Source: Malacoraja senta (lineage: Eukaryota). From it: a stretch of 64,000 nucleotides of DNA. Below, one piece after another: positions 9,885 through 62,696 of the stretch (positions within the stretch are counted from its first letter, which is position 1; every line of letters begins with the position of its first letter). The position numbers and the translations under genes are program-made. The DNA lies in contig CM075980.1 in NCBI GenBank assembly GCA_038087875.1, forward strand, positions 9,300,001 to 9,364,000, read 5' to 3'. The notes under the pieces are model-generated. The model was not told where the DNA came from. It worked only from the letters and a program-made list of their open reading frames with translations, and made no database searches.

Positions 9885-9930
9885 ATGGCTGCATGGGTTT
9901 GGGTTCTCGCCTTGGTGACCTGTTTCCACT
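9885..9930 (+). CDS. IGL: Ig lambda light chain cluster 1, leader exon (MAAWVWVLALVTCFH + 1 nt)
   Basis: ATG in GACATGG context, hydrophobic signal peptide, GTGAGT donor at 9931, 94-nt phase-1 intron in frame with the V exon. Confidence 0.93.
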
Positions 9931-10024
9931 GTGAGTAGAGCGCAGAATGATTAATGTTGTATCGTTTTACAATCTGCTGTGTTTTTTCTAATGGTTCTGT
10001 ATATTTATCTGTTTTTTCTATCAG

Positions 10025-10372
10025 GTATATACGCGGAGACTACCTTGACTCAGGTCCCGGCTATATCAACCTCGCCGGGAAAAACCGTCAAAATCACCTG
10101 TACCCTGTCAGGGGGCAGGATCGGTAGCTACTACACGAGCTGGTACTGGCAGAAGCCGGACAGCAGCCCTGTGTTCGTGTGGTATGAAGGCTCCACCAGA
10201 GGCACCGGAATTCCAGACAGATTCACGGGTTCCGTGGACTCATCCATTAACCAAATGCATTTAACCATCACCAACGTGCAATCGGAGGACGCTGCCGATT
10301 ATTACTGTGGTGCGTGTCACAGCAGTAACTACAAATTCACCTTTGGGAGAGGAACCAAACTGAATCTAAGCA
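10025..10372 (+). CDS. IGLV: Ig lambda (type II/NS3-like) germline-joined VJ exon, cluster 1 (CDR3 GACHSSNYKFT)
   Basis: CAG acceptor at 10022-10024. Ig V motifs ITC, WYWQKP, DYYC continue in frame into FGRGTKLNLS with no RSS between V and J. GTAAGT donor at 10373. Confidence 0.97.
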
Positions 10373-10467
10373 GTAAGTAAAATATTCACGTTTTGATACA
10401 ACGAATCGTTGAACTTAGGTTTTGCTTTCCCTCATAAATCCTCGGTAGAAAGATCATCTTAAACCTA

Positions 10468-10619
10468 AGTAGAACACAACGGGTCAGCTAGCATCTCAGG
10501 TAGACGTATGGATGGGCAATATTTCGTGTCGGAACAAAGTCTCTTTGGGAGACTGTACCGAAAGGAAAATCGTCGTTCTATGTCCTCCAGAGATGCTGTC
10601 GGATCCGCTGTGCTGTACT
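10468..10619. repeat. Imperfect ~75-bp-arm inverted repeat (two Penelope-like termini head to head) in J-C intron; copies 27300-27451, ~48590-48750, 62792-62943
   Basis: Centre AGTCTC-TTTGG-GAGACT (10538-10554). Outer arms match 23/30 (GAGATGCTAGCTGACCCGTTGTGTTCTACT vs GAGATGCTGTCGGATCCGCTGTGCTGTACT). Confidence 0.75.
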
Positions 10620-12224
10620 CAAGATGGCAACTTGTTTCTCCTACGTGAACTTGGTGTTTATGATCCTTTATCTCCATCCCTACAACACTCCGAGAAATCT
10701 GCGCTCACCTAACCGTGGCTTCTTGATCATCGTGGAATTTAACGCCTTCACATACTGACAGTTGTGCTTCAAAGTTGTTAAATTCTGGAATGATATCATC
10801 AAGCTCTATTTTCTCCTTTCTTCCCCGATGTTCATGAAACCTGTTCCTTTAACAGAAATACCGATTCTCTGATTTGAAGTATCCTCAAATGGCGGGTTTC
10901 GTCCGAGACTGCTGCTATTGATCACTTTGCTTCAATATAAGCGTAATGCAAACGAAAACTGTTGCCGTTTCCTGAAGAAATGTTCGGGAAATTATGAGAT
11001 TTTATTAGTTTTCGGTATATTGTGGATACGGAGAATACCAACTCTGACAGTGGGCCAAATCGAATCATTGGAAGCATCCAAATGAAAGTTAATAAACATT
11101 TGGCAAGGGATGTTGGTGAATTAAATGGGATATTTTTTAAATTGCAAATACCCATTAGGGCAACTTGCGCGAAGTTGATTTCTGATCGTTTTAATGATAC
11201 CATGAGGGTGAAGTGGCGTTTCGACGGGTTTACATGCGCTCCCGACAACAGCGCTAAAACTAATTGTCAAGGAAAAGGTAAAAAAACAAATATTTAAACG
11301 CTTCGCACGGCACCATTTCAATTCCCTTTACGCGAAAGTGTGGAGGATTGTTGCAAGTCTGATTCAGCTCCGAAATTAGAAACAAGAGCAGAACCGTATT
11401 CGGGTTCATTTCTCGTTCAGCTAGCCATTGCCACCTTAGCTGATCACATTTGTGTGGATATGCCGTCAGACACTTTGTACCCACCTTGTAGTACCTGCAA
11501 GGGATTTTGATGCTGGTTCTCCGATTGTCATCGAGCGTATGATGCAGCAGAAAACACAGCCTGTTCATTATGCTGTTAAACATGATCCCTCTGATTGTTG
11601 ATTTTATTTACGGGCAGGCAGTTGGTAGACCGACATGTTAAAAAGCTTAAAAGAGCGAGACATCATTTTGCCATTTTCGGATAAATTAGTGCAGAAATGG
11701 GCACACAAGTATACGAGGTTATTGCTGAATTGCCTAGAATCGAAAGATTGGAAGGATATATTACAGCTTTAAATTCAGCTTTAGCTTGATATGGTTTTTT
11801 AAGTCCGAATATGTTGGATGTTAAACCCAGAGCTGTCTCGATATGTGTCAGAAGGTATTTGAATCTGACAAAACATTTCCTGAGTTTTACCTTTCATATT
11901 GCTGACCGCCACAATCCTTGAATCAATGGACTTTCTGGACGATGTGGAAGATTCACTAATAAGTAACATTCTAAAGACTATTCCGGGAAAGAATTGGGAT
12001 TACTGTTTAAACAAGCATTAATTTGGAAATGCTGCTCATTCTGCCAGGATGAGGTGTGATTCCATTTTTCCTTCCCGTTTCCATGATCTGAAGAAAATCG
12101 TAGGCCACATGTTTTACCAAACCTCGGATATTCGCACAGTAAAAATTAACTTATCATGTTTCTGCTGTATAAAATGAGGTTTATAAATCAACGGTAATTG
12201 TAAAGCCAGTGCAGTACACCGCCA

Positions 12225-12700
12225 TAGAGCCACAGTCATAGAGTTATGCAGCGGTGGAACAGTCCTGAAGTCCACCTATTTCATGCCGACCGAGGTGCCC
12301 TACTTGAGCTGGTCCCATTTGCGCGTGCCAGGTCCATATCTCTTTGATCCTTTCTTATCCAAGTATTAATTGAAATGTTTTTTTAAATGGTGTTATTGTA
12401 CCTGCCTCATCAACTTCGCCGGGGAACTCTTTCCATGGAGTCAACGCATTATGTGTACAAATGTTGCACTGAACCTAAACCCTCTAATTCTTCATTCTCC
12501 TATTATGGGGAAAACCATAAGTATTCCGTGCGCTAACCCTATGTATTCCCCTCGCGATTTTGTATACCGCCATGCGATCACCCTAAGGACTTCTACATAC
12601 CAAGGACTAACGTCCTCGCATGTCCAATCTATGCCTATAGTTCAGGCGTTCGAAACCTGGCACCGTCGTCGTAAATCTTGCCTGGAGTCGTTCCAACTGA
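12225..12700 (-). mobile_element. Old, highly decayed CR1 3' end in J-C intron (copies ~29060-29540, 50350-50800)
   Basis: Patchy similarity to the reverse complement of the CR1 3' fragment at 1513-1752 (e.g. AAATGTTTTTTTAAATGGTGTTATTGTACCTGCCTCA). Confidence 0.65.
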
Positions 12701-12767
12701 ATCGATTCTGACTTTTAACGTCAACTGATAAATAACTCACTTGAATTTATTTCAATTCTATTTTCAG

Positions 12768-13090
12768 GTCCGCGGCCCCCCACCGTTTCCATTCTGGCGC
12801 CTTCAATGGGTGAAGTCACCGCAAAAAGTACCGCCACCCTGGTGTGTTTGGTGAGCGGGTTCAATCCGGGCGCTGTTGACATTGAATGGACCGTAGACGG
12901 CAGTGCGAGAAGTAATGGCGCTGCGACCAGCCGGGTCCAGCAGGAGAAGGACAACTCGTTCAGTGCGAGCAGTTACCTGACTCTGCCAGCCTCCGACTGG
13001 AACTCACACGACCTTTACTCCTGTGTGGTTAAACACGAAACCCAGGCAAACCCGATTAAGGCCAATATCGCCAGATCCAGTTGCCTCTAA
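12768..13090 (+). CDS. IGLC: Ig lambda light chain constant exon, cluster 1
   Basis: TTTTCAG acceptor (12761-12767). Phase-1 join gives S-PRPPTVSILAPS..ATLVCLVSGF..IEWTVDG..SSYLTL..YSCVVKHE..SSCL-stop with a penultimate Cys. Confidence 0.97.
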
Positions 13091-13269
13091 TTCAAAGGAT
13101 GAAATTCCCGATTTGCTACATTTCTTTGTAAATTAATCCAATATTCAGATATCGAATGTTCGCTTTAACAGGGTATTTGTTCAAACGCAGCACGTGTGCA
13201 TTTTGTTGCCTTGAATGCGCTGTCCGTATTTTACGATGAACTGAAAAACAATAATGTAACATTTAATGC

Positions 13270-13275
13270 AATAAA
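13270..13275 (+). terminator. Candidate polyadenylation signal AATAAA, cluster 1
   Basis: 180 nt after the C stop and conserved in clusters 2 and 3. A second AATAAA lies at 13341. Confidence 0.7.
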
Positions 13276-14069
13276 CCCGATTATTCTATTTACGATGCAT
13301 CGTTGTCATTTTACTGTGCAAATGTCCTTGCCTTCAATAGAATAAAAACAATAATGTCCGATGATGCCAGTGTATATAAACTGTCATTTAGTGAAACGTC
13401 GTTATATTTCAAATAAACTGCGTTTTCATGATTGATGATGATCCATGTGTTAGGACAGCTGAAGGGACTGCTTGCAAGTACCCCCCCGATTGAAGAAATT
13501 AGGTGCAAATCCGTGTCTCCTATTTTGGATATACCAGAAATACGGAAGGGCAGTCCGTTACGCTAATATGCTTAAATGACCCAAATGTCTCAAATCGATC
13601 CGCACAAAATATCACAATGTATCAGTTTATTCCATGAAAACGCGATGAAAAGTGTGGTTTGACGAATTCGTAAACCGCGGCATTACCGTGGTCCTAACTC
13701 AGCTCAACATGAATCACCAGAAGTGGTCATATATTTAAACAATGTAACGAGAGGAATAAAGTTCAGGCTCGGCGGGGTGAGCGCTAGACTCATCTTGAAG
13801 GGGGGCTTCGCGCCAACAATTAACCGAAGTAAAAGTAGTTACTTCGCGATTCCCAGAAATGGGATAAACAGCTTTCGGGATATGGCAACTGCTTGGATGT
13901 TCTTCTCTGGGAATTAAAAAAATGTTTAACAGGAGGAATAAATTGGGAGAATTTATGTACTGTGGCTGGGGAAAATCTGCTTCCGATGTGGGTAAGTCCT
14001 ATCTGGAGAGACCCTCCAGTATGATGTCAATTTCCAGTCATAAAATAACAGGTTGGGGACGTGTGCTGT

Positions 14070-14365
14070 CTATTTTCACCCCATCCCTTCCTCCACGGTT
14101 ATCATTCACTCCCTTTCCCCCTTATTTTATGGCTGATTTCACTTCTTGTTCACCCCCAGCCTTTGCCAAGTAACCCCCACCGCCATCTGCTAATCAATCC
14201 CCTCTCACATGTATCCACCTATCACTTGGCAGGCTGTATTACACCTCATATCTATTTTCCAGCTTTCTCCCCTCTGTTCCAATTACTCTGCAGAAGGTTC
14301 TCAACCTGAAATGATGCCTCGCCATTCTAATCAGATGTTGCCTGACCCGGCGAGTCATGTAGAGT
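14070..14365 (+). mobile_element. Penelope-like 3' terminal region with degenerate hammerhead core (copies ~30905-31200, 52180-52475)
   Basis: Pyrimidine-rich stretch, then CTGCAGAAGGTTCTCAACCTGAAA and CAGATGTTGCCTGACCCGGCGAGT, related to the terminus at 6748-6838. Confidence 0.6.
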
Positions 14366-15058
14366 CCAATGGCGATGTCTTGTTTTGCTGGATTTGTCCG
14401 GTATTATGATTACCTCTCTGATCGAATTTACCTCTTCAATCCACTTCTTGTCAGAAAAAACATAATCTCGGAGGCCCCATTAATTAAATAGAGAGCCGAG
14501 ATTAGAAAGTGAGAGTAGAAAGAAAAGTAACGTTTTATCCTTAAATATATACTATTTTCATTTTCTTGAATCAGCTTTTTCAACGATATAATTAATTTAC
14601 AAAGTGAGATTTTTTTAAAGAGACAAAACTCGTATTTTATAGTCTTACAGCCGCTTGTAAAATTGAAGTAATTAGGCGGGGAAAGCCTCAAAGTTAGTGA
14701 CAGAAGGAGAAACTCCGTCCTCAGCATTACCCTCTCTTGATCCAGGGCCAAGGCTTGATTGCTGGCGTGCATGAAGCGGACAACTCCTGGGGCCTTGTGG
14801 CTACCTTCCGCATCCGAAGCAGGCAAATCTGGACGGACGGCGGACCACATCTGGAACAATTCGCATGATATACGATTACAATTCGATACCCAACATTCTC
14901 ACAATTCCACTTGTGAAGCTCACTACGTATATTTATCAGTTAATGCAAAAGTCGTTACAAAGCCACAAATGACCGATATTTCCCACCATGGCCACGGTAC
15001 ATTATGATTCGTTCTTCACTAAAGGCTGGAGCTACGAACGTTTCCAAACAACGGAGAG

Positions 15059-15351
15059 GGGCACATTGGCCCAGCGCTGGAGGTGCTGCCTCACAGCGCC
15101 AGGGACCCGGGTTCAATCCCGACTATGGCTGCTGTCTGTATGAAATTTGTACATTCTCCCCAGAGCCGCGTGGGATTTATCTGGGTGCTCCGGTTTCCTC
15201 CCACGTTCCACAGACGTACAGATATTTTTAGATTAATTGCCTTCTGTAAATTGTCCCTATTGGATGGATATACTGTATGGGCTGATTGCTGGTCGGTGTT
15301 GACTCGATTAGCCGAAGGGCCTGTTTCCACGCTGTACTGAAGTAAACTAAA
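15059..15351 (+). mobile_element. tRNA-derived V-SINE (HE1-like)
   Basis: A box TGGCCCAGCGC (15067), B box GGTTCAATCCC (15110), V-domain core GGGTGCTCCGGTTTCCTCCCAC, CR1-type 3' tail GCCGAAGGGCCTGTTTCC and (TAAAC)n end. Confidence 0.88.
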
Positions 15352-15472
15352 CACTTGCGTCCACGAACTTACTGGATTGGAATGCTCGTCCGTTTCTTCA
15401 CTTCCTAGTTCAGTTGCAAAAATAAGACAAAGTGTCTTATTTGTCCCGACAACTGTGCGCCCCCCCCCCCCC

Positions 15473-15676
15473 CAGCGTCAGAGACACGGGTTCGATCTCG
15501 GCTACAGGAGCTTCTCTGTACGGAGTTTGTACGTGCACACCGTGACCTGCGTGGGGTTTCTCCGAGAACTTCGGTTTCCTCCCACACTCCAAAGGATAGT
15601 GTTAATGTACGGGGATCGCTCGTTGATGCGGACTCGGTGGGATGACTGGCCTGATTCCGCTATATCTCTAAACTAA
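15473..15676 (+). mobile_element. Second V-SINE, A box deleted in this unit
   Basis: B box GGTTCGATCTC and core CGGTTTCCTCCCACACTCCAAAG present. The unit-2 homologue (32796-33045) has ~120 bp more upstream, including the A box. Confidence 0.85.
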
Positions 15677-15899
15677 ACGAATGCCTTTGAAACAGGCTGT
15701 CGCTTTACAGTCCAACTTCATCATACCCTTCTCCCAACCCATTCAATGCCAGAGCTTGTACTAGACTTTGTTGAACATAACAAAGTCGCTGACAGATCAG
15801 AGCAGTAATTCCACAAACATTTGCATGTAAACAGAAACCCCTTTTATTTATTCCCCATCTGAACCGTAATTCCACGATTAAACATCGATATCGCCAAAA

Positions 15900-16445
15900 C
15901 GACGCAGGTCGGTGGACTCATCGATCGTGTTCCACTCGCGGAGACATGAGTTCCCTGGGCCTCATCTTTTACCCCACCAGCCTCTGCATCCAACACATAA
16001 TTCACAGACATTTTCGTCACCTCCCAACGTGATCCCACCACTAAGCACATCTTCCAATCTCCAACCTTTTCCGCATTCCGCAGAGACCATTCCCTCCGCA
16101 ACTCCTTGGTTCACTCATCGCTTTCCACTGAAGCAAATGTCCTTATTCCTCCACCGTCAGCTCCACCCAGCGACCTCGGCAGTGAGATTCACATGCACCT
16201 CCTCTAACCTTCTCTCCTCGATCTGGTGTTCCGGATGTGGGCTACTGAACATCGGCTAGACCAAGCGTAGACTCGGCGACCGTTTAACTGAACTTGCGAA
16301 GGCCTACTAGATCTCCCGGTGGCTAGCCCCTTTAACACCCCCCCCCTTCCCATTACACTGACCTTTCCGGCCTGGGCCTCCTCCATTGTCAGAGCGTGTG
16401 TACACGTACATTGGAGGAATAGCAACACATTTCGCTCGGGTAGCT
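15900..16445 (+). mobile_element. Penelope-like element GIY-YIG endonuclease remnant
   Basis: Translation RFTCTSSNLLSSIWCSGCGLLNIG*TKRRLGDR and DLSGLGLLHCQS..TLEE resembles the PLE GIY-YIG domain, interrupted by stops. Confidence 0.8.
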
Positions 16446-16449
16446 GATT

Positions 16450-16830
16450 GGTCACCTATCCTCACAGATTGTGGTCCGTTGGTCAGGAGGGTACTGATTC
16501 CGTTCCAATAGTTTGGAGATGAGCTTGCTTAGGATAATGGTATTGAAAGCAGGGCTCTGGTCTATGAATATGAGTCTATTGTAGGTGCTCGTCTCATCCA
16601 GATGTTCTAGGGACAAGTGTAGGTGCCAGAGAGATGGCATCAGCAGTGGACCTGTTGTGGTAGTAGGTGAACTGCTGTAGATCAAGGCTGCTTGGTAGGC
16701 TGAATCTAGCCGCTCCAGAAGCAATTCGTAATGGTGGATGTCAAGACATCTGGACGGTAGTCATTAAGGCATGAGATCTCGATGTTGTTTGGCATCGAGG
16801 AGATAGTGGTTTTCTTGATGCATGTCGGTA
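16450..16830 (-). mobile_element. Rex1/Babar RT fragment, decayed
   Basis: Minus peptides [28 protein letters not shown] align with [34 protein letters not shown] of the element at 36926. Confidence 0.8.
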
Positions 16831-19368
16831 CCTCAGAATTAATTCCCGGTCTACAACTAGACCAGTCCCGTTCACCAGAAAGAGCATGATTTTTCGATGA
16901 TCAACATTGATATCCTACACCCAGTAGCAAGTCGAACATATCCATGCTTTGACCCCATTTTCCTTTCCCCCGCGAGGCTTCGTTTGCGTTTGATGGGCGA
17001 CGAGTATTTTGGAAATACTGGTCAGCGTTTAGTGTTTCATCAACGCAGTATTCCTCACCCTCCATACGAGCTTGGATATTTGGCCCAGCAAGCTCCTGCC
17101 ATCACACCTTCGCGGCGCCACTTGGTTTATTTACACTCAGAAATGACAAGGAACAATAATCTTGCTGATAGTCCCTCCCCACGAACCCCTATTCGCCAAC
17201 GACATCTCTTCCCTACTCTAGAACCATTGGTGCTGGCCAGTGGCAGATCCGTCGATGGTTCTTTCCTGGGATCCTTAAACTCATCCCGTTGTTCCATGGC
17301 TTTAATGTTCACATCAATGGTAGGCTCTTCTGCGTTCCGGCTGTATTTCGTAAGATTATGTTGGTTCTGGTACAGTGAAATTGCAATGCAGTTTGTGGAA
17401 GTAGGTTGGCCAGACCAGGCATGAAGGACAATTTACATGGTAAAATTGTTCCACTTCCAACGGTGTCAGATGGTGTAACCTGAATCCAATGAATTCCAAT
17501 GGTGTAACCTGAATACAATAATTCACATTTTTAAATGACCTTTAAAATAAATAAATTTGAAATATATGTATAAAACTGCAACAGTTTCAGAAGGAAATGT
17601 CACTTCCTAATAAAAAAAAAGAGCAGGGGTCTAAAATTTGGTCAACAGAGATGGCTTTTGAGGTCAGCTACAAGGAGGAGTACAAAGTAGTGAGATGAAG
17701 ATATGTTTGTGTGAACTTCCAGAGATTTGGGATTTGCCAGGTGAAGACTGACGCCAATAATAAAAATAGTTAAAGCCAGGGATGCTTTTAGGTCCAGAAT
17801 TTGAGACCTCCTGCTCTTTCCAGTTGATATATTCTTTGTGCCTGATCAGCTATTTATTAAAAATGTTCCTCCTATTGAGGTAGTTAGTCTGGTGAAATGA
17901 ATAATGGGGTTTTCAATGAAATTAGGCGAGAATCAAAATATAGAACTATATCTTTTAAAGGTGCCTCGACTGCAAGCTACTGTGATATATATTCAATTGC
18001 ATTGCTGTACTTTAGTAAATTTCACCAGTTGTTATATCCATCATGTACTGCATTTACAACTCATAAGTCTGCGTAACAACCTGGGGGCTCTCGTGAAAAC
18101 TCACATTTGTTCTGCAATTTGGTTGTCTTCCGGAAGAAAACGCAGAGGGAAATATCTCTTATTCCCGGTTAGACTTAATTTCACAGAAGAAATGGTAGTA
18201 CAAGTCTCGCATAATATTACGTAAATAAATGATTGGAAAGTTTATGAAATTGCATTTATTTGAAAGCATATCATTCGTAAATAACAATATAATTGGGAAC
18301 AATTCCTATGCTTAAATGATCACAAGTGGATGGATCTCAGTTCACAACCGTTGGTTCTTGATTCTCCTACTCTGGGTAAAAGAGTAGAGGACGAAAGTTT
18401 AAGGTGAGAGGGGAATGATTTAATAGTAACCTGAGGGGCAACATTTTCGCACAGAGGTTGGTGAGTATATGGAACGAACTGCCACAAGAGGTAGTTCAAA
18501 CAGGTACTATAACAACATTTAAAAAAACATTTGGCCAGGTACATTGATAGGAAAGGTTTAGAGGGATACGGGCCAAACGCGGGCAGGTGGGACTCGTTGG
18601 GCCGAAGGGCTGTTTCCCTACTGAATAACTCCAAGTGATACATGCTTACAGCGGATCTGCAGAAATCATCGGTACCTGTACAAAAAGAAGCCCAGTTGGA
18701 AGAGGAATGCGGGTGCTGTTGAGCAGGAGCACTCATCTCTGTATCTTAAAATAAAGTTGTCTGGCGGCTCACAATAACCCAAGATGTAGCTTCGAGTAAA
18801 TTTTCATCCTGCATGATGTGGCGCAGCTTCGACGATGTTCTGTGGTCCCTGCCGTTATCTTGCTCCTAGATGCTGAATCAATCCAAAAATAGGGACATCA
18901 TCTGCAGCACCTTTGGGATATTCACAGTTCTTGTCATTTGTGGGGAGGCAAATGCAAACTGCTTGATGTGAAAATACTGGTATTGCCCAAATGTTCGTCT
19001 CTGTGCCGTACAGTCTTACAACAGTAGATGGCAGCATTGCATCGGTTATGAAATAATGTTCATTTATTGCGGAGATAGGACAAATGGTCAATTATCACTG
19101 TAGCAAAATTACGATAATGTGCTTGCCCATAAACCCATCTAATGTCTACTCATTTAGCGATTATGGGTGTGGATGCGAATATACTAAGTGAGGAGCGGCT
19201 TTAACTTTTGACACATGACAGTAAAAAAGACGGAGGAAATAAACTTACTGAATGCTCGCACGTGGAGAAACAAACACAAAATATTTTTCCTCGTAAGTGC
19301 AATTCATAGTGACATAGTATTAAAAAAAGAGTTCGGACAAACAACATACAAGCAGCTCGCTCTGGGTA

Positions 19369-20240
19369 AAGGATGTAATAGGCTGGGTGAGTGGGCAAAT
19401 GCATGGCAGATGCAGTATAATCTGGATAAATGTGAGGTTATCCACTTTGGTGGCAAAAACAGGAAAGTAGACTATTATCTAAATGGTGGCCGATTAGGAA
19501 AAGGGGAGATGCAACGAGACCTGGGTGTCATGGTACACCAGTCATTGAAAGTAGGCATGCAGGTGCAGCAGGCAGTGAAGAAAGCGAATGGTATGATAGC
19601 ATCCATAGCAAAATGATTTGAGTATAGGAGCAGGGAGGTTCTACTGCAGTTTTACAGGGTCTTGGTGAGACCACACCTGGAGTATTACGTACAGTTTTGG
19701 TCTCCAAATCTGAGGAAAGACATTCTTGCCATAGAGGGAGTACAGAGAAGGTTCACCAGACTAATTCCTGGGATGTCAGGACTTTCATATGAAGAAAGAC
19801 TGGATAGACTCGGCTTGTACTCGCTAGAATTTAGAAGATTGAGGGGGGATCTTATAGAAACTTTAAACATTCTTAAGGGCTGGACAGACTAGATGCAGGA
19901 AGATTGTTCCCGATGTTGGGGAAGTCCAGGACAAGGGGTCACAGTTTAAGGATAATGGGGAAATCCTTTAGGACCGAGATGAGAAAAACATTTTTCACAC
20001 AGAGAGTGGTGAATCTCTGGAACTCTCTGCCACAGAAGGTAGTTGAGGCCAGTTCATTGGCTGTATTTAAGAGGGAGTTAGATGTGGCCCTTGTGGCTAA
20101 AGGGATCAGGGGGTACGGAGAGAAGGCAGGTACAGGATACTGAGTTGGATGATCAGCCATGATCATATTGAATGGCGGTGCAGGCTCGAAGGGCCGAATG
20201 GCCTGCACCTGCACCTATTTTCTATGTTTCTATGTTTCTA
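19369..20240 (+). mobile_element. CR1 LINE 3' fragment, unit 2 copy
   Basis: Homologue of 2500-3368 (ORFs 19215-19616, 19662-19892, 19904-20143) with extra stops and frameshifts. Confidence 0.92.
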
Positions 20241-47949: not shown

Positions 47950-48013
47950 GAGAAACTTCGGAAGGGCTCAAAACCGCGCTTGTGCAGCAAAATATTCATT
48001 TTTCACCTTCGAC

Positions 48014-48059
48014 ATGGCTGAATGGGTTTGGGTTCTTGCCTTGGTGACCTGTTTCCACT
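48014..48059 (+). CDS. IGL: Ig lambda cluster 3 leader exon (MAEWVWVLALVTCFH + T)
   Basis: ATG at 48014, GTGAGT donor at 48060, 94-nt intron. Confidence 0.93.
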
Positions 48060-48153
48060 GTGAGTAGAGCGCAGAATGATTAATGTTGTATCGTTTTACA
48101 TTTTACTGTGTTTTTTCTAATGGTTCTGTATATTTATCTATTTTTTCTATCAG

Positions 48154-50869: not shown

Positions 50870-51192
50870 GTCCGCGGCCCCCCACCGTTTCCATTCTGGC
50901 GCCATCAATGGGTGAAGTCACCGCAAAAAGTACCGCCACCCTGGTGTGTTTGGTGAGCGGGTTCAATCCGGGCGCTGTGGACATTGAATGGACCGTAGAC
51001 GGCAGTGCGAGAAGTGACGGCGCTGCGACCAGCCGGGTCCAGCAGGAGAAGGACAACTCGTTCAGTGCGAGCAGTTACCTGACTCTGCCAGCCTCCGACT
51101 GGAACTCACACGAGCTTTACTCCTGTGTGGTTAAACACGAAACCCAGGCGACCCCGATTAAGGCGAATATCGCCAGATCCAGTTGCCTCTAA
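50870..51192 (+). CDS. IGLC: Ig lambda constant exon, cluster 3
   Basis: CCAG acceptor to 50869. 323 nt, 8 nt differences from C1, 3 amino-acid changes. Confidence 0.97.
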
Positions 51193-51371
51193 TTCAATGG
51201 ATCAAATTCCCGATTTGCTACATTTCTTTGTAAATTAATCCAATATTCAGATATCGAATGTTCGCTTTAACAGTGTATTTGTTCAAACGCACCATGTGTG
51301 CATTTTGTTGCATTGAATGCGCTGTCCGTATTTTACGGTGAACTGACAAACAATAATGTAACATTTAATGC

Positions 51372-51377
51372 AATAAA
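51372..51377 (+). terminator. Candidate polyA signal, cluster 3
   Basis: AATAAA homologous to 13270. Confidence 0.7.
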
Positions 51378-52683
51378 CCCGATTATTCTATTTACGATGC
51401 ATCGTTGTCATTTTTTGTGCAAATGTCCTTGCCTTCAATAGAATTTAAAAAATAATGTCCGAACAGCGCGGCAGTGTGTATAAACTGGCATTTTGTGAAA
51501 CTTCGTTATATTTCAAATAAACTGCGTTTTCATGATTGATGATGATCCATGTGTTAGGACAGCTGAAGGGACTGCTTGCAAGTACCCCCGATTGAAGAAA
51601 TTAGGTGCAAATCCGTGTTTCCTATTTTGGATATCCCAGAAATACGGAAGTGCAGTCTTGGCATTACGCTAATATGCTTAAATGACCCAAATGTCTCTAA
51701 TCGATCCGCACTAAATATCACAATATATCAGTTTATTCCATGAAAAACGCGATGAAAAGTGTGCTTTGACGAATTAGTTAACCGCGGCATTACCGTGGTC
51801 TTAAATCAGCTCAACATTAATCACCAGAAGTGGCGATATATTTAAACAGTATAACGAGAGGAATAAAGTTCAGGCTCGGCGGGGTGAGCGCTCGACTCAT
51901 CTTGAAGGGGGGCTTCGCACCAACAATTAACCGAAGTAAAAGTCGTTACTTCGCGATTCCCAGAAATGGGATAAACAGCTTTCGGGATATGGCAACTGCT
52001 TGGATGTTATTCTCTGGGAATTTAAAAAAAGTTTAACAGAGGGAATAAATTGTGAAAAGTGATGTACTGTGGCTGGGGAAAATCTGCTTCCGATGTGGGT
52101 AAATCCTATCTGGAGAGACCCTCCAGTACGATGTCAATTTCCAGTAGTAAAATAACAGGTTGGGGACGGGTGCTGTCTATTTTCACCCTATCCCTTCCTC
52201 CACGGTTATCATTCACTCCCTTTCCCCCTTATTTTGTGGCTGATTTCACTTCCTGTTCCCTTTCCCCCCCAGGTCTTTGCCAACTAAACCCCTACCCCCA
52301 TCTGCTAATCAACCCCCTCTCACATGTATCCACCTATCACTTGGCAGGCTGTATCACACCTCATATCTATTTTCCAGCTTTCTCCCCTCTGTTCCAATTA
52401 GTCTGCAGAAGGTTCTCGACCTGAAATGACGCCTCACCACTCTAATCAGATGTTGCCTGACCCGGCGAGTCATGTTGAGTCCAATGGCGAAATCTTGTTT
52501 TGCTGGATTTGTCCGGTATTATGACCACCTCTCTGATCGAATTTACCTCTTCAAACCACTTCTTGTCAGACAAAGCATAATCTCGGAGGCCCCATTAATT
52601 AAATGGAGAACAGAGATTAGAAAGTAAGAGTAGAAAGAAAAGTATCGTTTTATCCTTAAATACATACTATTTTCATTTTCTTG

Positions 52684-53016
52684 CAAACCACCTTTTCCAG
52701 TCTCTCCCTTCAGGGAGGCGCCTTAGGTCACTTGCTACAAAATCCACCCGTTTTAAAAACAGTTTCTTCCCCTCAGCAATAAGAACACTTAATTCCCTCC
52801 AATAACTTAATAACTTTTTGACTTTGATGTATACAGTGTCTTGTCTATGGTTTTTGTCTGTTCTTTTGCACTATGAGATTTGTGATTTGTGATGTGCTTT
52901 ATTATTATTGTTGTTAATGTGCTAAAGCAGTGTACCATCATGTACCGAACCCAATTACCACCAACCCTGGTCGTGTGGCAAATAAAGTTTCTATTCTATT
53001 CTATTCTATATTCGAT
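52684..53016 (+). mobile_element. Short Rex1/Babar 3' fragment at the unit 3/4 junction
   Basis: Encodes ANHLFQSLPSGRRLRSLATKSTRFKNSFFPSAIRTLN*, similar to the end of the 36926 element. AATAAA at 52981, (CTATT)3 tail at 52991-53005. Confidence 0.87.
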
Positions 53017-54871
53017 TACTGGTCAGCGTTTAGTGTTTCATCAACGCAGTATTCCTCAACCTCCATGCGAGCTTGGATATTTGGCCCAGCAAGCTCCTGC
53101 CGTCACATCTCCGCGGCGCCACGTGGTTTATTTACAGTCAGAAATGACAACGAACAATAATCTTGCTGAGAGTTCCTCCCCACGAACCCCTATTCGCCAA
53201 CGACATCTCTTCCCTACTCTAGAACCATTGGCGCTGGCCAGTGGCAGGCCCGCCGATGGTTCTTTCCTGGAATCCTGAAACCCATCCCGTTGTTCAATGG
53301 CTTTAATGTTCGCATCAATGGTAGGTTCTTCTGCGTTCCGGCTGTATTTGGTGAGATTATGTTGGTTCTGGTACAGTGGAATTGCAATGCAGTTTGTGGA
53401 AGTAGGTTGGTCAGACCAGGCATGAAGGACAATTTACATGTTAAAATTGTTCCACTTCCAATGTTGTCAGATGGTGTAAGTTGAATCCAATGAATTCCAA
53501 TGGTGTAACCTGAATCCAATAATCCACATTTTTAAATTACCATCATACACTGCATTTACAACTCATAAGTCTGCGTAACAACCTGGGAGCTCTCGTGAAA
53601 ATTCTCATTTGTTCTACAATTTGGTTGTCTTCCGGAAGGAAACCCAGAGGGAAATATCTCTCATTCCCGGTTAGATTTAATTTCACAGAAGAAATGGTAG
53701 TACAAGTCTCACATAATATTACATAAATAAATGATTGGAAAGATTATGAAATTGCATTTATTTGAATGCAGATCATCCGTGAATAACAATATAATTGGGA
53801 ACAATACCTATGCATATATGATCACAAGTGGATGGATCGCAGTTCACAACCGCTGGTTCTTGATTCTCCTACTCTGGGTAAAAGAGTAGAGGACGTAGGT
53901 TTAAGGTGAGAGAGGAATAATTTAATAGGAACCCGAGGGGCAACATTTTCGCACAAAGGTTGGTGAGTATATGGAATGAGCTGTCACAAGAGGTAGTTCA
54001 AACAGGTACTATTACAACATTTAATAAACATTTGGACATGTACATTGATAGGAAAGGTTTAAAGGGATACGGGCCAAACGCGAGCAGGTGGGACTCGTTG
54101 GGCCGAAGGGCTGTTTCCCTACTGAATAACTCCGTGATACATGCTTACAGCGGATCTGCAGAAATCATCGGGACCTGTACATAAAGAAGCCCAGTTGGCA
54201 GAGGAATGCGGGTGCTGTTGAGTAGGAACACTTATCTCTGTATCGTAAAATAAAGTTGTCTGGCCGCTCACAATAACCCAAGATGTAGCTTCGCGTAAAT
54301 GTTCATCCTGCAAGATGTGGCGCTGCATTCGACGATCTTCTGTGGTCCCTGCCGTTATCTTGCTCTTAGATGCTGAATCAATCGAAAAATAGTGACATCA
54401 TCTGCAGCACCTTTGGGATATTTACAGTTCTTGTCATTTATGGGGAGGCAAATGCAAACTGCTTGATGTGAAAATGCTGGTATTGCCCAAATGTTCGTCT
54501 CTGTGCCGTACAGTCTTGTAACAGTAGATGGCAGCATTGCATCGGTTATGAAATAATGTTCATTTATTGCGGAGATAGGACAAATGGTCAATTATCACTG
54601 TAGCAAAATTACGATAATGTGCTTGCCCATAAACCCATCTAATGTCTACTCATTTGGCGATTATGGGTGTGGATGCGAATATACTAAGTGAGGAGCGGCT
54701 TTGACTTTTGACACATGACAGTAAAAAAGACGGAGGCAATAAACTTACTGAATGCTCAATTGCACTTGGAGAAACAAACACAAAATATTTTTCCTCGTAA
54801 TGGCAATTCATAGTGACATAGTCTTAAAAAAAGAGTTCGGACAAACAACATACAAGCAGCTCGCTCTGGGT

Positions 54872-55741
54872 AAAGGATGTAATAGGCTGGGTGAGTGGGC
54901 AAATAAATGCATGGCAGATGTAGTATAATGTGGATAAATGTGAGGTTATCCACTTTGGTGGCAAAAACAGGAAAGTAGAGTATTAGGAGGCCGATTAGGA
55001 AAAGGGGAGATGCAACGAGACCTGGGTCTCATGGTACACCAGTCATTGAAAGTAGGCATGGAGGTGCAGCAGGCAGTGAAGAAAGCGAATGGTATGATAG
55101 CATTCATAGCAAAAGGATTTGAGTATAGGAGCAGGGAGGTTCTACTGCAGTTGTACAGGGTCTTGGTGAGACCACACCGGGAGTATTACGTACAGTTTTG
55201 GTCTCCAAATCTGAGGAAAGACATTCTTGCCATAGAGGGAGTACAGAGAAGGTTCACCAGACTAATTCATGGGATGTCAAGACTTTCATATGAAGAAAGA
55301 CTGGATAGACTCGGCTTGTACTCGCTAGAATTTAGAAGATTGAGGGGGGTTCTTATAGAAACTATAAAAATTCTTAAGGGTTGGACAGGCTGGATGCAGG
55401 AAGATTGTTCCCGATGTTGGGGAAGTCCAGGACAAGGGGTCACAGTTTAAGGATAAAGGGGAAATCCTTTAGGACCGAGATGAGAAAAACATTTTTCACA
55501 CAGAGAGTGGTGAATCTCTGGAACTCTCTGCCACAGAAGGTAGTTGAGGCCAGTTCATTGGCTGTATTTAAGAGGGTGTTAGATGTGGCCCTTGTGGCTA
55601 AAGGGATCAGGGGGTATGGAGAGAAGGCAGGTACAGGATACTGAGTTGGATGATCAGCCATGATCATATTGAATGGCGGTGCAGGCTCGAAGGGCCGAAT
55701 GGCCTAAACCTGCACCTATTTTCTATGTTTCTATGTTTCTA
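54872..55741 (+). mobile_element. CR1 LINE 3' fragment, unit 4 copy
   Basis: Homologue of 2500-3368 (ORFs 55010-55450, 55381-55644). Confidence 0.92.
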
Positions 55742-58700
55742 ATAGAAATCGACCGCGTGGGCAGAAGATACTGATGCAGTCTCCGATTATAACGGTAGAT
55801 GGCGGTGCAGTACCATACTTCTGTGCTGAAGCTCAACACGCCAATTCTGAAATGGGTCAACTGCAATATTATGTGTCTGAGCTCACGTATAGACCAGACC
55901 AGCAATAATTGGATTATTTTCCCCTTGAAGGATATATTTGGGATCCAGTTGTTTTGTAATAATCAATCAAACACCGTGATGTTTCTTTTGAAAGATTCTA
56001 GACACTTAACAGAATTTAGATTCCACATGTTCTCTTTTGAAAGGCCTCTGCGTTCGTAATGATGTGATTTCGGTTTGATACCATTGCTTATCTGCACTTC
56101 CTTCACCTTTGCAGGGAGCGATTTTACGGAATCTTTCACTGGATATAAATATTCTCCTTTCACGGTTTTCTGATTCTGCTACGGTATAACCAGCTTGAGA
56201 GCTAACCTCTCCGGTTACTCAATACTATGTTCTTTGCAACCCAACATATATCACAGGTTTTGCTCACTACTCTCGCGATGTATCTTTTTACCTTGCCAGA
56301 TGTGTGCTCATGAACCTAAAGTCCCTCTGTTCCTGCGCACTATGAACTACATTGCCCCCCCCCCCCGCCTTCCATACACGAGGCAAAATTTCCTAGCTCA
56401 TACTTCTCTGTGAGAGATTTCATCCATCATTCATCTGCTCATTCTCGTGTCATATTTAAATTTGAAGTGCACGCTGAGTACTCCTCTCTCTCTCCTGCGT
56501 GTAAGCCGCTATTCTATCACGATTGTCGATGTGAATATATTGCTGTCGGTAGAGAACTCAACTAGGTATAGGGATAGAGGAGAATGAAATAATTGGCCAA
56601 AATGTTCGTGCATACTGAATGCGAATAATAAGAATGTTACCTTATATATCTCCGGGAGAGCCTTTAATTTTTTCCCCAACAAACATGAAGACAGTTGCAA
56701 ACAGGATTTTGTACATTTGATTGTGTTATCTATGACTTGCCCAAAATCACTGGATGCAAATTGCTTTGAATTTATTGTTGCTACTCTCCATTACATAGTT
56801 TATTGTATTCGCTGGACCTGTTCGGCAAATTCTGAGTAATTGTGGGTCTGGAGTCACATACATTTTAGACTTTTCCTTCTTAAAGTAACTGAAATCACTT
56901 TTAATTACAACTCAATAGCGTCATGCTTGCGTTACCAATTCCAGCTTTTAATTTCAGATTTACTTTAACTCTGATATCAGCGCCAAATCACAGAATTATA
57001 TTGAATTCAGTTATCTCCAATTGTGCTGAATATCAAAAAGACTACAGGTAATACGTGATTCATTAATTCAAAGAATATTAATGTTTGTTTTGCGTCTTAT
57101 TCTATCACGAATGCACAATAATGGCGTTCCACGCTGGACTGGGGAGAAGAACACGAAATATACATGAATATCATTCTCCACTTCCATTAGTGACATTACT
57201 TCAGACCTCCATAAGCTGCATTTGCCATCTACATCCACCATTCAGATGTCCGCACTCACCAAGCTTATTTCTTCAGATCTGGCCTGGCAGCTATCTCCAG
57301 CTTTCTGCAAGGAGACCCTGAACGCGGGCTTGGACTGGGGTGAGTAGGTCTGAGGGTGCCGCGGCAACGGACTTGCCCTTGAGACAGGCAGGATACATCC
57401 ATCCCCAGGTTTCCATGTCCTCTAGAGATGCTGCACGACCCGCTGAGTTTCTCCAGCACATTGTGTTTTAAAAAAAATCAGCAGCTGAAGTTCTCAGTAC
57501 CCCCCAAGGTTTCCATCTATAAATTTGCCAAGGTGTTTGGTTCTGAATATCAATGAAAGTCATAAAGATAAAAAATACGGCGGCATGAGATGAACGCTAT
57601 TCTCTTAAAAGAAACAAACAGAAAATCAAATTACATCTCATTTAACACTGAGAACTCTTGCTTGCAGAAACATCGCAGGCACGTGGACTGAGACAGAAAA
57701 AACACACAGGAACAAATTATACATCAATTATACATACAAATCTGAAAGAAACAAACAAGATTGCGTCCTAAAACATAACAATATAAAACATGTCGATAGT
57801 GTGCAAGGAATGGGGCATGGTGTCCCTTTGTTGAGGCAAGATTAGGGTTATGTAGGTCCTTCCAAAAACTGGATAGTTGTAGGCAAGTAACTGTTCTTGA
57901 ACCGGGTGGTGTACTTTCTGTAGTAGATCTGTAAAAGTTTGTTGGAATATTTGGAGACATAAAGTATTTCTTTAAAATTCTTTGAAAGTAGAAGCATTGG
58001 CGCTCTTCCGTGGATGCATTTGTTTGCTGGGCCCGAGACAAGTCATCCACGATGTTAATGCCGTGAATTTAAAGCTGATAACTCTCTCCACCACTGCTCC
58101 ACCAAAAACAAACTGGGCTGAGGTCCCCGGACTTCCTCTTTCTGAAGTCAGCGACCACTTCGGTCTTGTTGCTTTGGAGCGAAAGGTTGTTGTTCTGACA
58201 CCACTCAACCAAGTGTTCCGTCTCTCTTCATGTTGACGCAGCACCATCAGTGATTCGTCCAAACAGAATGGTGTTGGGGGTGGATAAATAGATGACTTTG
58301 GAGCTGTGGGTGTAAAGGAAGTAGCCATGGGTGTAAAGGAAGTAGAACAGGGTGCAAAGCACGCAGCCTTGAGATGCACTGTGTTGATGATCAATGGGGA
58401 GGAGATGATGTTCCCCATCCGCACTCGGTCACGAAGCTAATTCACCAAACAGTAAAATGGTGACTAAGCTGATTGTAACCTCTGATGTGCGGTCCCATCC
58501 AGCTCTGTAACATATCACTACCCACCTTGTTTATTAGGAATATTTCTACCTTTGAAAAATAATAAAGACTGCTTCTAGCACATTTTCAGAAACGTAATTG
58601 ATGAGGCTTTCTCCATTCTGATAAATATGTTTGTTTCTTCACTTTTGAAGTAGGCATTTATTTTTGTGTAACCGGTGACGTTTAGTTTTAGATTACCCCA

Positions 58701-59479
58701 GACGAATTGTCCTCGCCCTTCACATGCTGTTAAGACCCCGCATAATCACCTGTGCTTCAATTAAAGCACCTCTCACGCTTCTAACCGTCGAGCAATTCCT
58801 CATAAAACAACTCACTCGTTGCAGATATGGGTCCACTAGTAATCATTTTCTGAATTGCTTCAACCGCATTTACATTTCAATACTCTGCTCGATTCTGCGA
58901 TAAAGTTTAAGTGAAGCACTATCAACCTCTCTCTTTTGCATTCGTTTTTTCAGGCGTAAGATGCTAACACTGTTACCTTTCATAGGTAGTTGTTGTACCT
59001 CATTCCAGCCTGTTGCGAATCCTACCAGGGAACCGACATACTTCTGCATCTCAAAACACTGCAAACTGTCATAATGTAAATAAGAAGGGCCTCGACCCGA
59101 AACGTCACCTATTCCTTCTCTCCAGAGATGCTGCCTGTCCCGCTGAGTTACTCCAGTCTTTTGTGTCTATATTGTAAAGAACATTATTTTATATCATTTA
59201 CCCTTCCAAAATTGACATTTCACATGTTCCCACATCGTGCATTTACCAGGCATTTGCCCATTCACTGGAACTATCCACATGCACGGCGGCCTTGTTTGGT
59301 TCTTCATGTCATTAGCAAATTCAACAGCCAGACATTTTTCAGCCGTGTTTATACATTTTTGGAAATTGTGGCTCCAGCACTGATCTATGAGGCACATACC
59401 TTTTTGCATAACCAGAAATTAGCCTGTTTATGCGTTTTCTATATTTCCAACTGATCGCCCAATGTTCTGTTCTTCCGAT

Positions 59480-60570
59480 GACGATAAACATCAGGACTCT
59501 TAGGAAATAGGAGCAGGATAAGGCCATTCGGTCCTTCGAGCAGCACCTCCGTTCAATATGATCATGGCTGATCATCCAAAATCAGTACCCCGTACCTGCT
59601 TTCTCCCACATCTCATGATTCCGTCAGCCCTGAAAGCTATATCTAACTCTCTCTTGAACATATCCAGTGAATTGGCCTCCACTGCCTTCAGTGGCAGAGA
59701 ATACAACAGATGCACAACTCGCTGGGTAAAAATGTGTTTCCGCATCTCAGTCCTAAATGCCCTACCCCTTATTTTTAAACGGCGACCCCTGGTTCTTGAC
59801 TCCCCTAACATCGGGCATATATTACCTGCATCTAACGCATCCAATCCCTTAAGAATGTTATATCTTTCTATAAGAACCCCTCTCAGCCAACCGAATTCCA
59901 GTGCATATAAGCCCAGTCAATCATTTGTCAGTTCCACCATACCGGGAATTAATCTGGTGAACCTACGTTGCACTCCCTCAATAGCAAGAATGTCCTTCTT
60001 CAAATTAGGCAACTAAAACGGCACACATTTTTCCAGGTGTGGTTTCGCCAGGGCCCTGCAGTAGGTCCACCTTTCTCCAATACTCAAATCCTCTCGCTAT
60101 GAAGGCCAACATGTAATTTGCTTTCTTCACTGCCTGCTGTACCTGCATGCTTTCTTTCAGTGACTGATGTTCAAGGACACACAGGTCTCGTTGCACCTCC
60201 CCTTTCCCTAATCTGACACCATTGAGATAATAATCTGACCTTGTTTTTGCCACCAAAGTGGATAACCTCATATTTATCCACACAATACTGCATATGCCAT
60301 GCATCTGCCCACTCACCCATCTTGTCCGTCACCCTGCAGCCTCATAGCATCTTCCTCGCAGCTCACACTGCCACCCAGCTTTGTGTGATCCGCAAACTTG
60401 CAGATGTTACATTTAATTCCTTCATCATCGTCAATATATATTGTATATAACCGAGGTCCCATCACTGAGTCTTGTGGCACTCCACTAGTCACTGCTTGCC
60501 ATTCTGAAAAGAACCAACTAATTCCTACTCTTTGCTTCCTGTCTGCCATACAGTTCTCCATCCGTCAATA
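59480..60570 (-). mobile_element. CR1 LINE 3' fragment, unit 4 copy
   Basis: Near-identical to 7155-8245. ORF 59572-59844 is identical in protein to 7247-7519. Confidence 0.9.
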
Positions 60571-60712
60571 CCCTACCCGCAATATTACCGTATTATTTAC
60601 CATATCAACCTTTGATTCATCTCCTTAACAAATGCCTGCTCGAAATTATATCTGCCTGGCATGGTACTTCTTCAAAGCCTTCCGTTAAGTTGGCGAAACA
60701 TCGTTCATGAAT

Positions 60713-61420
60713 TCATAGATTGTAGGAGGGGAATTAGGCTATTCGGCCCATCAATTCTACCCCACCATTCTATCACGCTTGATTTATCTTTTCTTCTCAA
60801 CCCCATTCTCCTGACTTCTTCTCATAACCCTTAATATAGTTACTAATCAACAACCACTCAATCTCCACCTTAAAAATATCAATTGACTTGGCTTCCACAG
60901 CCTTCTGTGGCAATGAATTCCACAGATTTACCACCCTCTCACTAAAGGATTTCCTCCTCATCTCCTTTTTAAATGGACGTGCTTTTATTCTGAGGCTTTC
61001 ACCTCTGGTCCTAGACTCCCCCGCTCGGCGAAACATCCACTCCACATCCACTCTATCCAGGCCTTCACAATTCGGTTAATTTCAATGAGGTCTCACCCCT
61101 CTCATCTTCATAAACTATATAGCGAGCACGGATCCAGTGCCGTCAAACGCTCATCACACGTTAACCCAATTATGCCTGGGATCACCCTCGTAAACCTCCT
61201 CTGGACCCTCTCCAATGCCAACTCATCCTTCCTCAGATTGGAGCCCAAAACTGCTCACAACACTCCAAATGCGGTCTGACCAGTGCCTTATAAAGGCTCA
61301 GCATTACATCCCTGTTTTTGTATTTTGTTTTTGTGTTCTGGCCCTCTCGAAAGAAATGCTTTCCTTGCTGCCGACTTGTAAATTAACTTTTGGGAAATCC
61401 TGCACCAGCACTCCTGAGCC
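60713..61420 (-). mobile_element. Second CR1 subfamily fragment, unit 4 copy
   Basis: Homologue of 8388-9095. Confidence 0.83.
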
Positions 61421-62054
61421 CCTTTGCTCTCTCTTTATCAACAACATTTTAACTTTTGCGAGATAATCTGGATCATTTTGTCAGTACCCTTTATATCGTT
61501 TTGGTAACAGCTTCCAATATTTCTCCAGGACAGATGTGCAACCAACTGGCCTGCGGTGGACGACTTTCTGTCTCTCTTCCTTTCTGAACGTCCATGGTAG
61601 TGTTGAAATAAAAAAAATCAAACCAATGAATTCAGTACTGCAAGGGAATTAATTAAGACTCTAGAATGAAATACAATACATCTCAACGCCCTGTCAGCCC
61701 GATGAAAAATTACCATTTAAATAATCTGCCATTTCCATATTCCCCTTTAATTATACGACTGCGAATTATTTGTAGGAAAAGGACAAATGTATTATTTTAT
61801 ACTTATTTGGGAGCTTAAGGGGATTATTGCAAAGTCTGTACAGTCCCATCAATCAACACAGCTGATCCCTTTTACTCAGTAAATAAGAGCCTGCTCTCAC
61901 ACAACAGTTCCCGTCTGAGTCTCAGAGCTTCTCTCCCCCTCCCCCCGCCGCCGTTGAGATCACCGTTGTCAGCTATTCTCCTCCCACTTAAAACAATATG
62001 AATATTTCTTTCTCCCAAAGGGCTGGAGCTGCAGAAATCTCATTTTACACGGAG

Positions 62055-62144
62055 CCAATAATTCAGTGAATCGATGTGACGTGGATAAAGATTTTGCATG
62101 AATAATTAATAATTAGTGACGTTGGGATGCTGAAGACTTTAAAA
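62055..62144 (+). promoter_or_regulatory. IgL cluster 4 promoter: CCAAT, TGACGT (62077), ATTTTGCAT (62091), TGACGT, TTTAAAA
   Basis: Positional homologue of the other promoters. Confidence 0.7.
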
Positions 62145-62208
62145 GAGAAGCGTCGAAAGGGCTCAAAACCTCGCTTGTGTAGCAAAATATTGGTTTATCA
62201 CCTTCGAC

Positions 62209-62254
62209 ATGGCTGCATGGGTTTGGGTTCTCGCCTTGGTGACCTGTTTCCACT
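62209..62254 (+). CDS. IGL: Ig lambda cluster 4 leader exon
   Basis: MAAWVWVLALVTCFH + T, GTGAGT donor at 62255. Confidence 0.93.
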
Positions 62255-62348
62255 GTGAGTAGAGCGCAGAATGATTAATGTTGTATCGTTTTACATTCTG
62301 CTGTGTTTTTTCTAATTGTTCTGTATATTTATCTGTTTTTTCTATCAG

Positions 62349-62696
62349 GTATAAACGCGGAGACTACCTTGACTCAGGTCCCGGCTATATCAACCTCGCC
62401 GGGAAAAAACGTCAAAATCACCTGTACCCTGTCAGGGGGCAGCATCGGTAGCTACTACACGAGCTGGTACTGGCAGAAGCCGGACAGCAGCCCTGTCTTC
62501 GTGTGGTATGGAAGCTCCACCAGAGGCACCGGAATTCCAGACAGATTCACGGGTTCCACGGACTCATCCATTAACCAAATGCATTTAATCATCACCAACG
62601 TGCAATCGGAGGACGCGGCCGATTATTACTGTGGTGTGTGGGACAACAGTAACTACAAATTCACCTTTGGGAGAGGAACCAAACTGAATCTAAGCA
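62349..62696 (+). CDS. IGLV: Germline-joined VJ exon, cluster 4 (CDR3 GVWDNSNYKFT); C exon expected ~1.1 kb beyond the window end
   Basis: CAG acceptor 62346-62348, open frame, GTAAGT donor at 62697. The J-C intron continues to 64000. Confidence 0.97.

Follow-up and report, generated by a model that had tools for sequence, protein, structure and literature searches.

Does a stretch of skate DNA carry antibody light-chain genes whose variable (V) and joining (J) parts were already fused before any lymphocyte existed, and if so, how old is the fusion, how were the fused genes multiplied, and how could a B cell use one of several ready-made neighbours? This is the question raised by the locus described here, a stretch of 64,000 nucleotides (nt) of Malacoraja senta (assembly GCA_038087875.1, contig CM075980.1, 9,300,001 to 9,364,000), hereafter the window, numbered 1-64000 and free of N runs. 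Light chains that are joined in the germline form the textbook exception to the assembly of antibody genes by RAG, and they bear both on the origin of V(D)J recombination and on the choice that a B cell makes among equivalent receptor genes. With high confidence, we read the window as holding four paralogous clusters, side by side, of the lambda (type II, NS3-type) family, with V and J already fused in the inherited DNA.

Cluster anatomy and the V-J junctions

Exon borders and reading frames were taken from the list of open reading frames (ORFs) and from direct reading of the sequence, and the leader, VJ and constant (C) exons were each searched individually. Four light-chain clusters, all on the plus strand, were found in the window, with VJ-to-VJ distances of 16,832, 21,297 and 14,195 bases. 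All begin with the same layout (leader exon, 94-nt intron and in-frame fused VJ exon), and in the three that the window covers in full, an intron of ~2.4 kilobases (kb), the C exon and AATAAA follow; the leader, the fused VJ and the single C fit inside ~3.4 kb per cluster. The leader exon (46 nt) begins with ATG and ends at a phase-1 donor (CACT/GTGAGT, where the slash marks the border). The VJ exon (342-348 nt) is bounded by a pyrimidine-rich acceptor (TCTATCAG/) and by a phase-1 donor (AGCA/GTAAGT), and runs uninterrupted from framework 1 through the Cys and complementarity-determining region (CDR) 3 to the J motif FGRGTKLNL. The C exon (323 nt) opens at a phase-compatible acceptor (CAG/GT), encodes a C1-set domain and terminates in SSCL followed by a TAA stop, and the poly(A) signal AATAAA stands 180 nt 3′ of this stop in all three C exons. 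Splice donors, acceptors and phases are mutually consistent across the clusters.

The domain searches gave the same picture, since Pfam recognized a V-set domain in each of the four VJ exons (E 1e-15 to 2e-17) and a C1-set domain in each of the three C exons (E 2e-25 to 5e-25). This is the architecture of a secreted light chain, with single V and C1-set domains, a Cys at the C-terminus for the bond to the heavy chain and no transmembrane exon, and no additional immunoglobulin (Ig) exon was seen 3′ of the C exons when the whole window was searched with tblastn. Moreover, because the tblastn searches returned exactly four leader, four VJ and three C copies, and no fragment of a leader, V, J or C, the window contains no pseudogene. 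These results bear out what an earlier sequence-only reading of this DNA had proposed, namely four co-oriented clusters 14-21 kb apart (the spacings are 16.8, 21.3 and 14.2 kb), in-frame V-J fusions with intact splice sites (true of all four), three intact visible C exons with their poly(A) signals (that of cluster 4 would fall past the window end), an absence of pseudogenes, and V regions that all differ (82-93% pairwise identity to unit 1, a unit being the repeat that carries one cluster). Its end points were also exact, position 9885 being the first ATG and 62696 the final base of the fourth VJ exon.

The same reading had described the junctions as lacking a recombination signal sequence (RSS). 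Indeed, a scan of both strands of the window, which accepted at most one mismatch in the heptamer, a spacer of 12 or 23 +/− 1 nt and at most two mismatches in the nonamer, found no RSS at or near any of the four V-J junctions. The scan returned four matches in the window against ~1.5 expected by chance, and these lie elsewhere: all are minus-strand strings that overlap the leader exon and its donor site (9896-9933, 26728-26765, 48025-48062 and 62220-62257), each with a perfect heptamer, a 22-nt spacer and a nonamer with two mismatches. The four RSS-like strings are one ancestral occurrence that was copied four times. Note that CDR3 of cluster 2 holds a heptamer-like string (6 of 7 positions), for which direct reading found no nonamer-like sequence at either spacing.

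The junctions also date the fusion. The codons SNYKFTFG at the junction are common to units 1, 2 and 4, and unit 3 shows an in-frame deletion of two codons at the same spot. Since three units share their junction codons and the fourth differs by an in-frame deletion, the V-J join is older than the duplications of the unit, and it was inherited by the copies instead of being made anew in each of them. An origin of the fused genes as retrocopies is rejected, because both introns have been kept.

Two ancestries could be considered for the gene in which the join first existed: either a split V and J were joined by RAG in germ cells and the product was then duplicated, or the fused genes are relics of an ancestral V that had never been split. 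Bony vertebrates have split lambda genes, and lambda itself is said, in work of Criscitiello and Flajnik from 2007, to predate the divergence of cartilaginous and bony fishes, which argues against an ancestor that was never split. In addition, the joined NS4 genes of the nurse shark derive from split ones through RAG-like joining in germ cells (PMC2193156). On the other side, the junctions carry no trace of an RSS and no recognisable P/N-like additions, and cartilaginous fishes are not known to have a split lambda gene (PMC5192425, PMC4279169), as would suit relics of this kind. Altogether, we consider the never-split ancestry improbable, and the sequence of the window alone cannot choose between it and RAG-type joining in germ cells. 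The coordinates of all the features are collected in Table 1.

Table 1. Positions of the light-chain exons, putative promoters, repeat units and other features in the window
Feature	Positions	Strand	Remarks
Leader exon, cluster 1	9885-9930	+	ATG to phase-1 donor
Fused VJ exon, cluster 1	10025-10372	+	CDR3 GACHSSNYKFT; V-set E 1.1e-15; no RSS
C exon, cluster 1	12768-13090	+	C1-set E 1.9e-25; AATAAA 13270-13275
Leader exon, cluster 2	26717-26762	+	
Fused VJ exon, cluster 2	26857-27204	+	CDR3 GVQDHSNYKFT
C exon, cluster 2	29602-29924	+	AATAAA 30104-30109
Leader exon, cluster 3	48014-48059	+	two substitutions relative to the other leaders
Fused VJ exon, cluster 3	48154-48495	+	most divergent; CDR3 GVWDGSKFT, two codons shorter
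C exon, cluster 3	50870-51192	+	AATAAA 51372-51377
Leader exon, cluster 4	62209-62254	+	
Fused VJ exon, cluster 4	62349-62696	+	CDR3 GVWDNSNYKFT; its C exon lies past base 64000
Putative promoter region, cluster 1	9760-9825	+	degenerate octamer-like motif 9760-9786; TATA-like box 9813-9825
Putative promoter block, cluster 2	26592-26657	+	octamer-like motif 26592-26618
Putative promoter block, cluster 3	47890-47954	+	octamer-like motif 47890-47915
Putative promoter block, cluster 4	62084-62149	+	octamer-like motif 62084-62110
Repeat unit 1	1-16870	+	from self-alignment
Repeat unit 2, phase-equivalent start	~16871	+	
Repeat unit 3, phase-equivalent start	~34238	+	
Repeat unit 4, phase-equivalent start	~52873	+	cut by the window end
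LINE-type retroelement piece	36972-39494	+	spacer of unit 3 only; colinearity interrupted 36925-39658
CpG-undepleted domain (~4.3 kb), first	9635-14135		matches a transcription unit
CpG-undepleted domain (~4.3 kb), second	~26467-30967		matches a transcription unit
CpG-undepleted domain (~4.3 kb), third	~47764-52264		matches a transcription unit
CpG-undepleted domain, fourth	61959-64000		matches a transcription unit; reaches the window end

The amplified unit and the identity of its genes

Self-alignment of the window is colinear across entire units, with the spacers and their retroelement debris included, at 91-96% identity. As examples, positions 16-14467 align with 16886-31308 at 96.4%, 1-2683 with 34238-36925 at 95.8% and 1168-11676 with 53540-64000 at 96.5%, and unit 3 as a whole stands at ~91% to the other units. 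The unit lengths are ~16.9, 17.4 and 18.6 kb, and the debris in the spacers includes a piece of ~840 nt that is present in both orientations with ~77% identity. This unit-wide colinearity supports the earlier proposal that the whole block of ~17 kb, laden with transposable elements, was amplified, and the array would have grown by tandem duplication, most simply by unequal crossing-over, of 17-19 kb units together with the retroelement debris inside them. Units 1, 2 and 4 are roughly equidistant from one another and unit 3 is the outlier, so that similarity does not follow adjacency and the history was therefore not a simple one-by-one duplication.

A piece of the long interspersed nuclear element (LINE) type interrupts the spacer of unit 3. 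Because it occurs in this unit alone, it was inserted after the duplication, and together with other insertions and deletions (indels) on the kb scale, it accounts for the uneven gene spacing of 14-21 kb. Its ORF (36972-39089) is open over 705 amino acids with a full RVT_1 domain (E 1.4e-31), and the family to which it belongs may have been active recently.

Repeats of 17 kb that stand in tandem and are 96% identical are difficult to assemble, and the contigs of independent sequencing runs are fragmented across the array with many differing letters, two facts that would suit a copy number inflated by the assembly, in which haplotypes or wrongly joined repeats were placed one after another. However, the units differ by 3.5-9% and, in addition, by the 2.5 kb LINE and by kb-scale indels, which is far beyond allelic difference, and each V protein is distinct. 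Moreover, among the four runs aligned on positions 47500-53400 (X1, X2, X24 and X3), run X1 contains 426 nt of the unit-3 intron that differ at one position only, whereas the other units are ~8% different; because of this match, unit 3 is real in the data of run X1. Only a slim chance is thus left to inflation by the assembly. Run X1 may derive from the assembly's own sample.

Two further repeats were noticed in the region covered by these runs. The segment 52622-53015, just 3′ of cluster 3, reaches a word depth of ~160,000-170,000 in X1 and of 6,000-10,700 in X2, and almost zero in X3, which comes from another organism. Such depths would suit an interspersed repeat of very high copy number that is restricted to a lineage. 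The other is a repeat of ~200 nt in the J-C intron (48682-48878) that recurs 3′ of the C exon (52228-52424); all three organisms examined carry it in high copy number (depth in the hundreds to thousands), with contigs that jump between both sites.

As for the isotype, the closest named relatives of the VJ exon in protein searches (cut-off E <= 1e-8) were two entries from the sandbar shark, an ‘immunoglobulin lambda light chain’ at 73% identity and a VJ fragment of lambda at 67%, followed by a chimaera Ig-like domain and by mammalian lambda V regions. The alignment with sandbar shark lambda has the frameworks and the J motif FG.GTKLNL in common, and the top single-domain matches of the VJ exon in PDB were human lambda-6 V domains. 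All named matches below the cut-off were lambda, none of them a type I or sigma-2 entry, which places the V domain with lambda/type II and not with type I/sigma-2. Since the V domain matches lambda, and given the linkage of the exons within each cluster, the genes are probably best filed as lambda (type II). A surrogate light chain or another non-rearranging receptor was considered and rejected, as the V domain matches lambda, the C tail is that of a light chain and no further exons are present.

Several observations weigh against our reading and should be set beside it. An exact octamer was found in none of the four putative promoters, the run search found no RNA data set that contains the stretch, and the four runs gave, over their aligned region, short DNA-like contigs on introns and spacers and no leader-VJ or VJ-C joints. 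With the C exon, the atlas search placed an ‘Ig lambda chain C region’ cluster first (0.97), with a kappa C cluster equal to it (0.97), and the word search gave, in the length range that it covered, only two ‘hypothetical proteins’, which are mislabelled bacterial entries. Finally, the tissue source of the assembly is not given, and we infer the germline state from the assembly itself. Apart from these points, the PDB matches of the C exon were mostly multi-domain heavy chains and are uninformative on isotype. It should also be noticed that these two proteins, recorded for Aeromonas veronii and Salmonella enterica, are 72-74% identical to the C exon (12767-13087); the most likely explanation is a contamination of the bacterial assemblies with fish DNA. 

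The results with the C exon touch the alternative that the clusters are type I (sigma-2/sigma-cart), the other germline-joined isotype of skates. The C exon by itself does not separate light-chain isotypes, and the type I genes of skates are likewise all germline-joined (PMC5192425; PMC2192082). However, the named VJ matches are lambda only, from sandbar shark to mammals, the single-domain PDB matches are human lambda V domains, and the first atlas cluster for the C exon is itself a lambda one. Because no type I entry is found among the VJ matches, type I is disfavoured, and we find it hardly credible; lambda stands as the preferred isotype.

The weakest alternative, in which lymphocyte DNA was assembled and the germline V and J are still split, could lean on the missing tissue source and on run contigs that are short and, among those listed, never bridge a V-J junction, but a somatic origin is very unlikely because the join predates the duplications and 4/4 copies are joined in distinct and diverged units: the same junction codons stand in three units that are 96% identical over >10 kb, which polyclonal lymphocytes could not assemble, no RSS lies at or near the V-J junctions and no spare J in the window, no joint or loose end is listed at the junction in the three runs with depth there, and the literature reports these genes as joined in non-lymphoid DNA (PMC5192425, PMC4279169, PMC2435157). 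The assembled DNA would therefore represent the germline, with V and J joined in the inherited sequence.

Diversification, CpG retention and expression

The differences among the four V domains lie mainly in the CDRs. In the comparison of unit 1 with unit 2, identity is 96.0% in the VJ exon, below that of the flanking introns (97.9% and 98.3%), and 99.1% in the C coding sequence, above that of the introns. Summed over pairs, the proportion of replacement differences (pN) in the CDRs is 0.124 and that of silent differences (pS) is 0.050, i.e., a ratio of 2.5, compared with 0.83 in the frameworks and 0.05-0.2 in the C exon pairs. This pattern suggests that selection diversified the CDRs and that the C exon and the frameworks stay fixed. 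The earlier reading had spoken of an innate-like, pre-made repertoire, a view that is compatible with these CDR-focused replacements and with the same CDR-biased divergence in the joined light chains of skates, reported in 1995 (PMC2192082).

The individual sites of the VJ exon do not tell one single history. At codon 70 (10234-10235 and equivalents), a two-base change from Val to Thr is common to units 3 and 4, at odds with the flanks of unit 4, which group with units 1 and 2, and other VJ sites group units 1 and 3 against units 2 and 4. Such incompatible groupings hint at patchy conversion between copies, or at parallel change or selection. In unit 1, CDR3 contains an extra Cys (10312-10320, GACHSS…) that the other three units do not have.

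Gene bodies and spacers differ in their CpG content. The observed/expected ratio of CpG is 0.91 in the gene bodies (15.5 kb) and 0.60 in the spacers (48.5 kb), with a G+C content of 0.42 and 0.43, respectively. Along each gene, this ratio keeps to 0.85-1.2 from ~250 nt 5′ of the ATG to ~4 kb 3′, just beyond the poly(A) signal, and then falls sharply to 0.3-0.7 in the spacers (Table 1). At equal overall divergence, CpG-to-TpG/CpA differences between units affect 8.2% of the CpG sites in gene bodies and 13.2% in spacers, in comparisons of paralogue pairs that are not independent of one another. These values suggest that each transcription unit, its 2.4 kb intron included, may be little methylated in germ cells. 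GC-biased gene conversion is an unlikely cause of the CpG retention, because the G+C content of the gene bodies is not elevated.

A tentative and rather unlikely extension is that the CpG domains mark an unmethylated or open state of every lambda cluster in germ cells. If true, the openness of the locus in germ cells would explain how RAG gained access to lambda genes in the germ line; in addition, the choice of a cluster by a B cell could not depend on demethylating one copy, and would have to act later, via the promoter-enhancer complex or at the level of the receptor.

As to expression, each cluster would form a complete transcription unit, in which a promoter with a degenerate octamer and a TATA-like box precedes the leader, VJ and C exons and the poly(A) signal. 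The octamer-like motif varies by unit, with one inserted base in units 1 and 2 and one mismatch in each of units 3 and 4, and the TATA-like box, 27 nt 3′ of it, is the same in all four. From such a unit, the light chain would be made by transcription and splicing only, with no cutting by RAG and hence with no combinatorial or junctional diversity. Diversity would come instead from many inherited copies with CDRs diverged under selection, and later somatic hypermutation, as described in the literature, would add to it.

The choice among the clusters may be approached by analogy. In a study of shark heavy-chain clusters, it was proposed that few clusters are active per B cell because the promoter-enhancer complex forms rarely (PMC2435157). 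If the light-chain genes behave likewise, the most likely course would be the rare, stochastic activation of a single cluster followed by selection at the receptor level; expression and hypermutation of the genes in the window are presumed as well. The sequence-only reading had remarked that nothing visible in the DNA explains exclusion among ready-made neighbours, and it was right, on a question that was already familiar and is not new. This exclusion question is real, and its answer lies in expression and chromatin data, not in sequence.

Comparison with known systems

Joined type II (lambda, NS3) clusters belong to the sandbar shark, the horned shark, the nurse shark, the skate and the ratfish. 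The genes of the window are like these type II clusters in having a leader, a fused VJ and a single C inside ~3.4 kb, with no RSS at the V-J junction and with a C1-set domain that ends in a Cys-containing tail, and there is no categorical difference between them. With the lambda chain of the sandbar shark, in particular, they share the V frameworks and the J motif at 73% identity. Reviews describe lambda/type II light-chain genes as germline-joined in all cartilaginous fishes studied, with cluster numbers that vary widely (PMC5192425; PMC4279169), in agreement with the background on which the earlier reading had drawn. Moreover, NS3 of the nurse shark is non-rearranging and germline-joined (PMC2435157), and chromosome-level work locates the clusters of one isotype together (PMC12227049).

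Because these reviews and shark studies have established both the phenomenon and the exclusion question, the joined lambda array of the window is an already known phenomenon, recognised as the normal condition in sharks and skates since the 1990s, and holds no new principle. An account of a skate lambda array on the scale of a genome did not turn up in the literature that was searched, and what is added here to the type II picture is the spacing of 14-21 kb, the co-duplicated, retroelement-rich spacers and the CpG-retaining domain around each gene. The window therefore offers a clean, base-level example of an amplified unit of 17-19 kb, of a join that preceded duplication, of CDR diversification and of CpG domains repeated four times.

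Among the other joined systems, the type I genes of the skate Raja erinacea (sigma-2/sigma-cart; Anderson et al. 1995, PMC2192082) are close in kind. They are all joined, with many paralogues that are expressed, and their amino-acid differences are concentrated in the CDRs, where replacements outnumber silent changes, as found here; unlike them, the V domains of the window match lambda. The NS4 genes of the nurse shark (kappa/type III; Lee et al. 2000, PMC2193156) share the fused germline VJ and the cluster organisation, and a case was made that RAG-like activity had joined them in germ cells. However, NS4 mixes split and recently joined genes, which allows RAG-type joining to be reconstructed, whereas the array described here has no split relative in the window and its join is older than the duplications. 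Finally, the mouse VJ-lambda1 knock-in (Oberdoerffer et al. 2003, PMC2193966) provides a working model for the switching on of pre-joined genes, since it is a ready-made lambda gene that is known to be turned on by developmentally timed transcription. It differs from the skate locus in being a single engineered gene, placed in a translocon locus where receptor editing is available, whereas the clusters of Malacoraja senta form a natural array.

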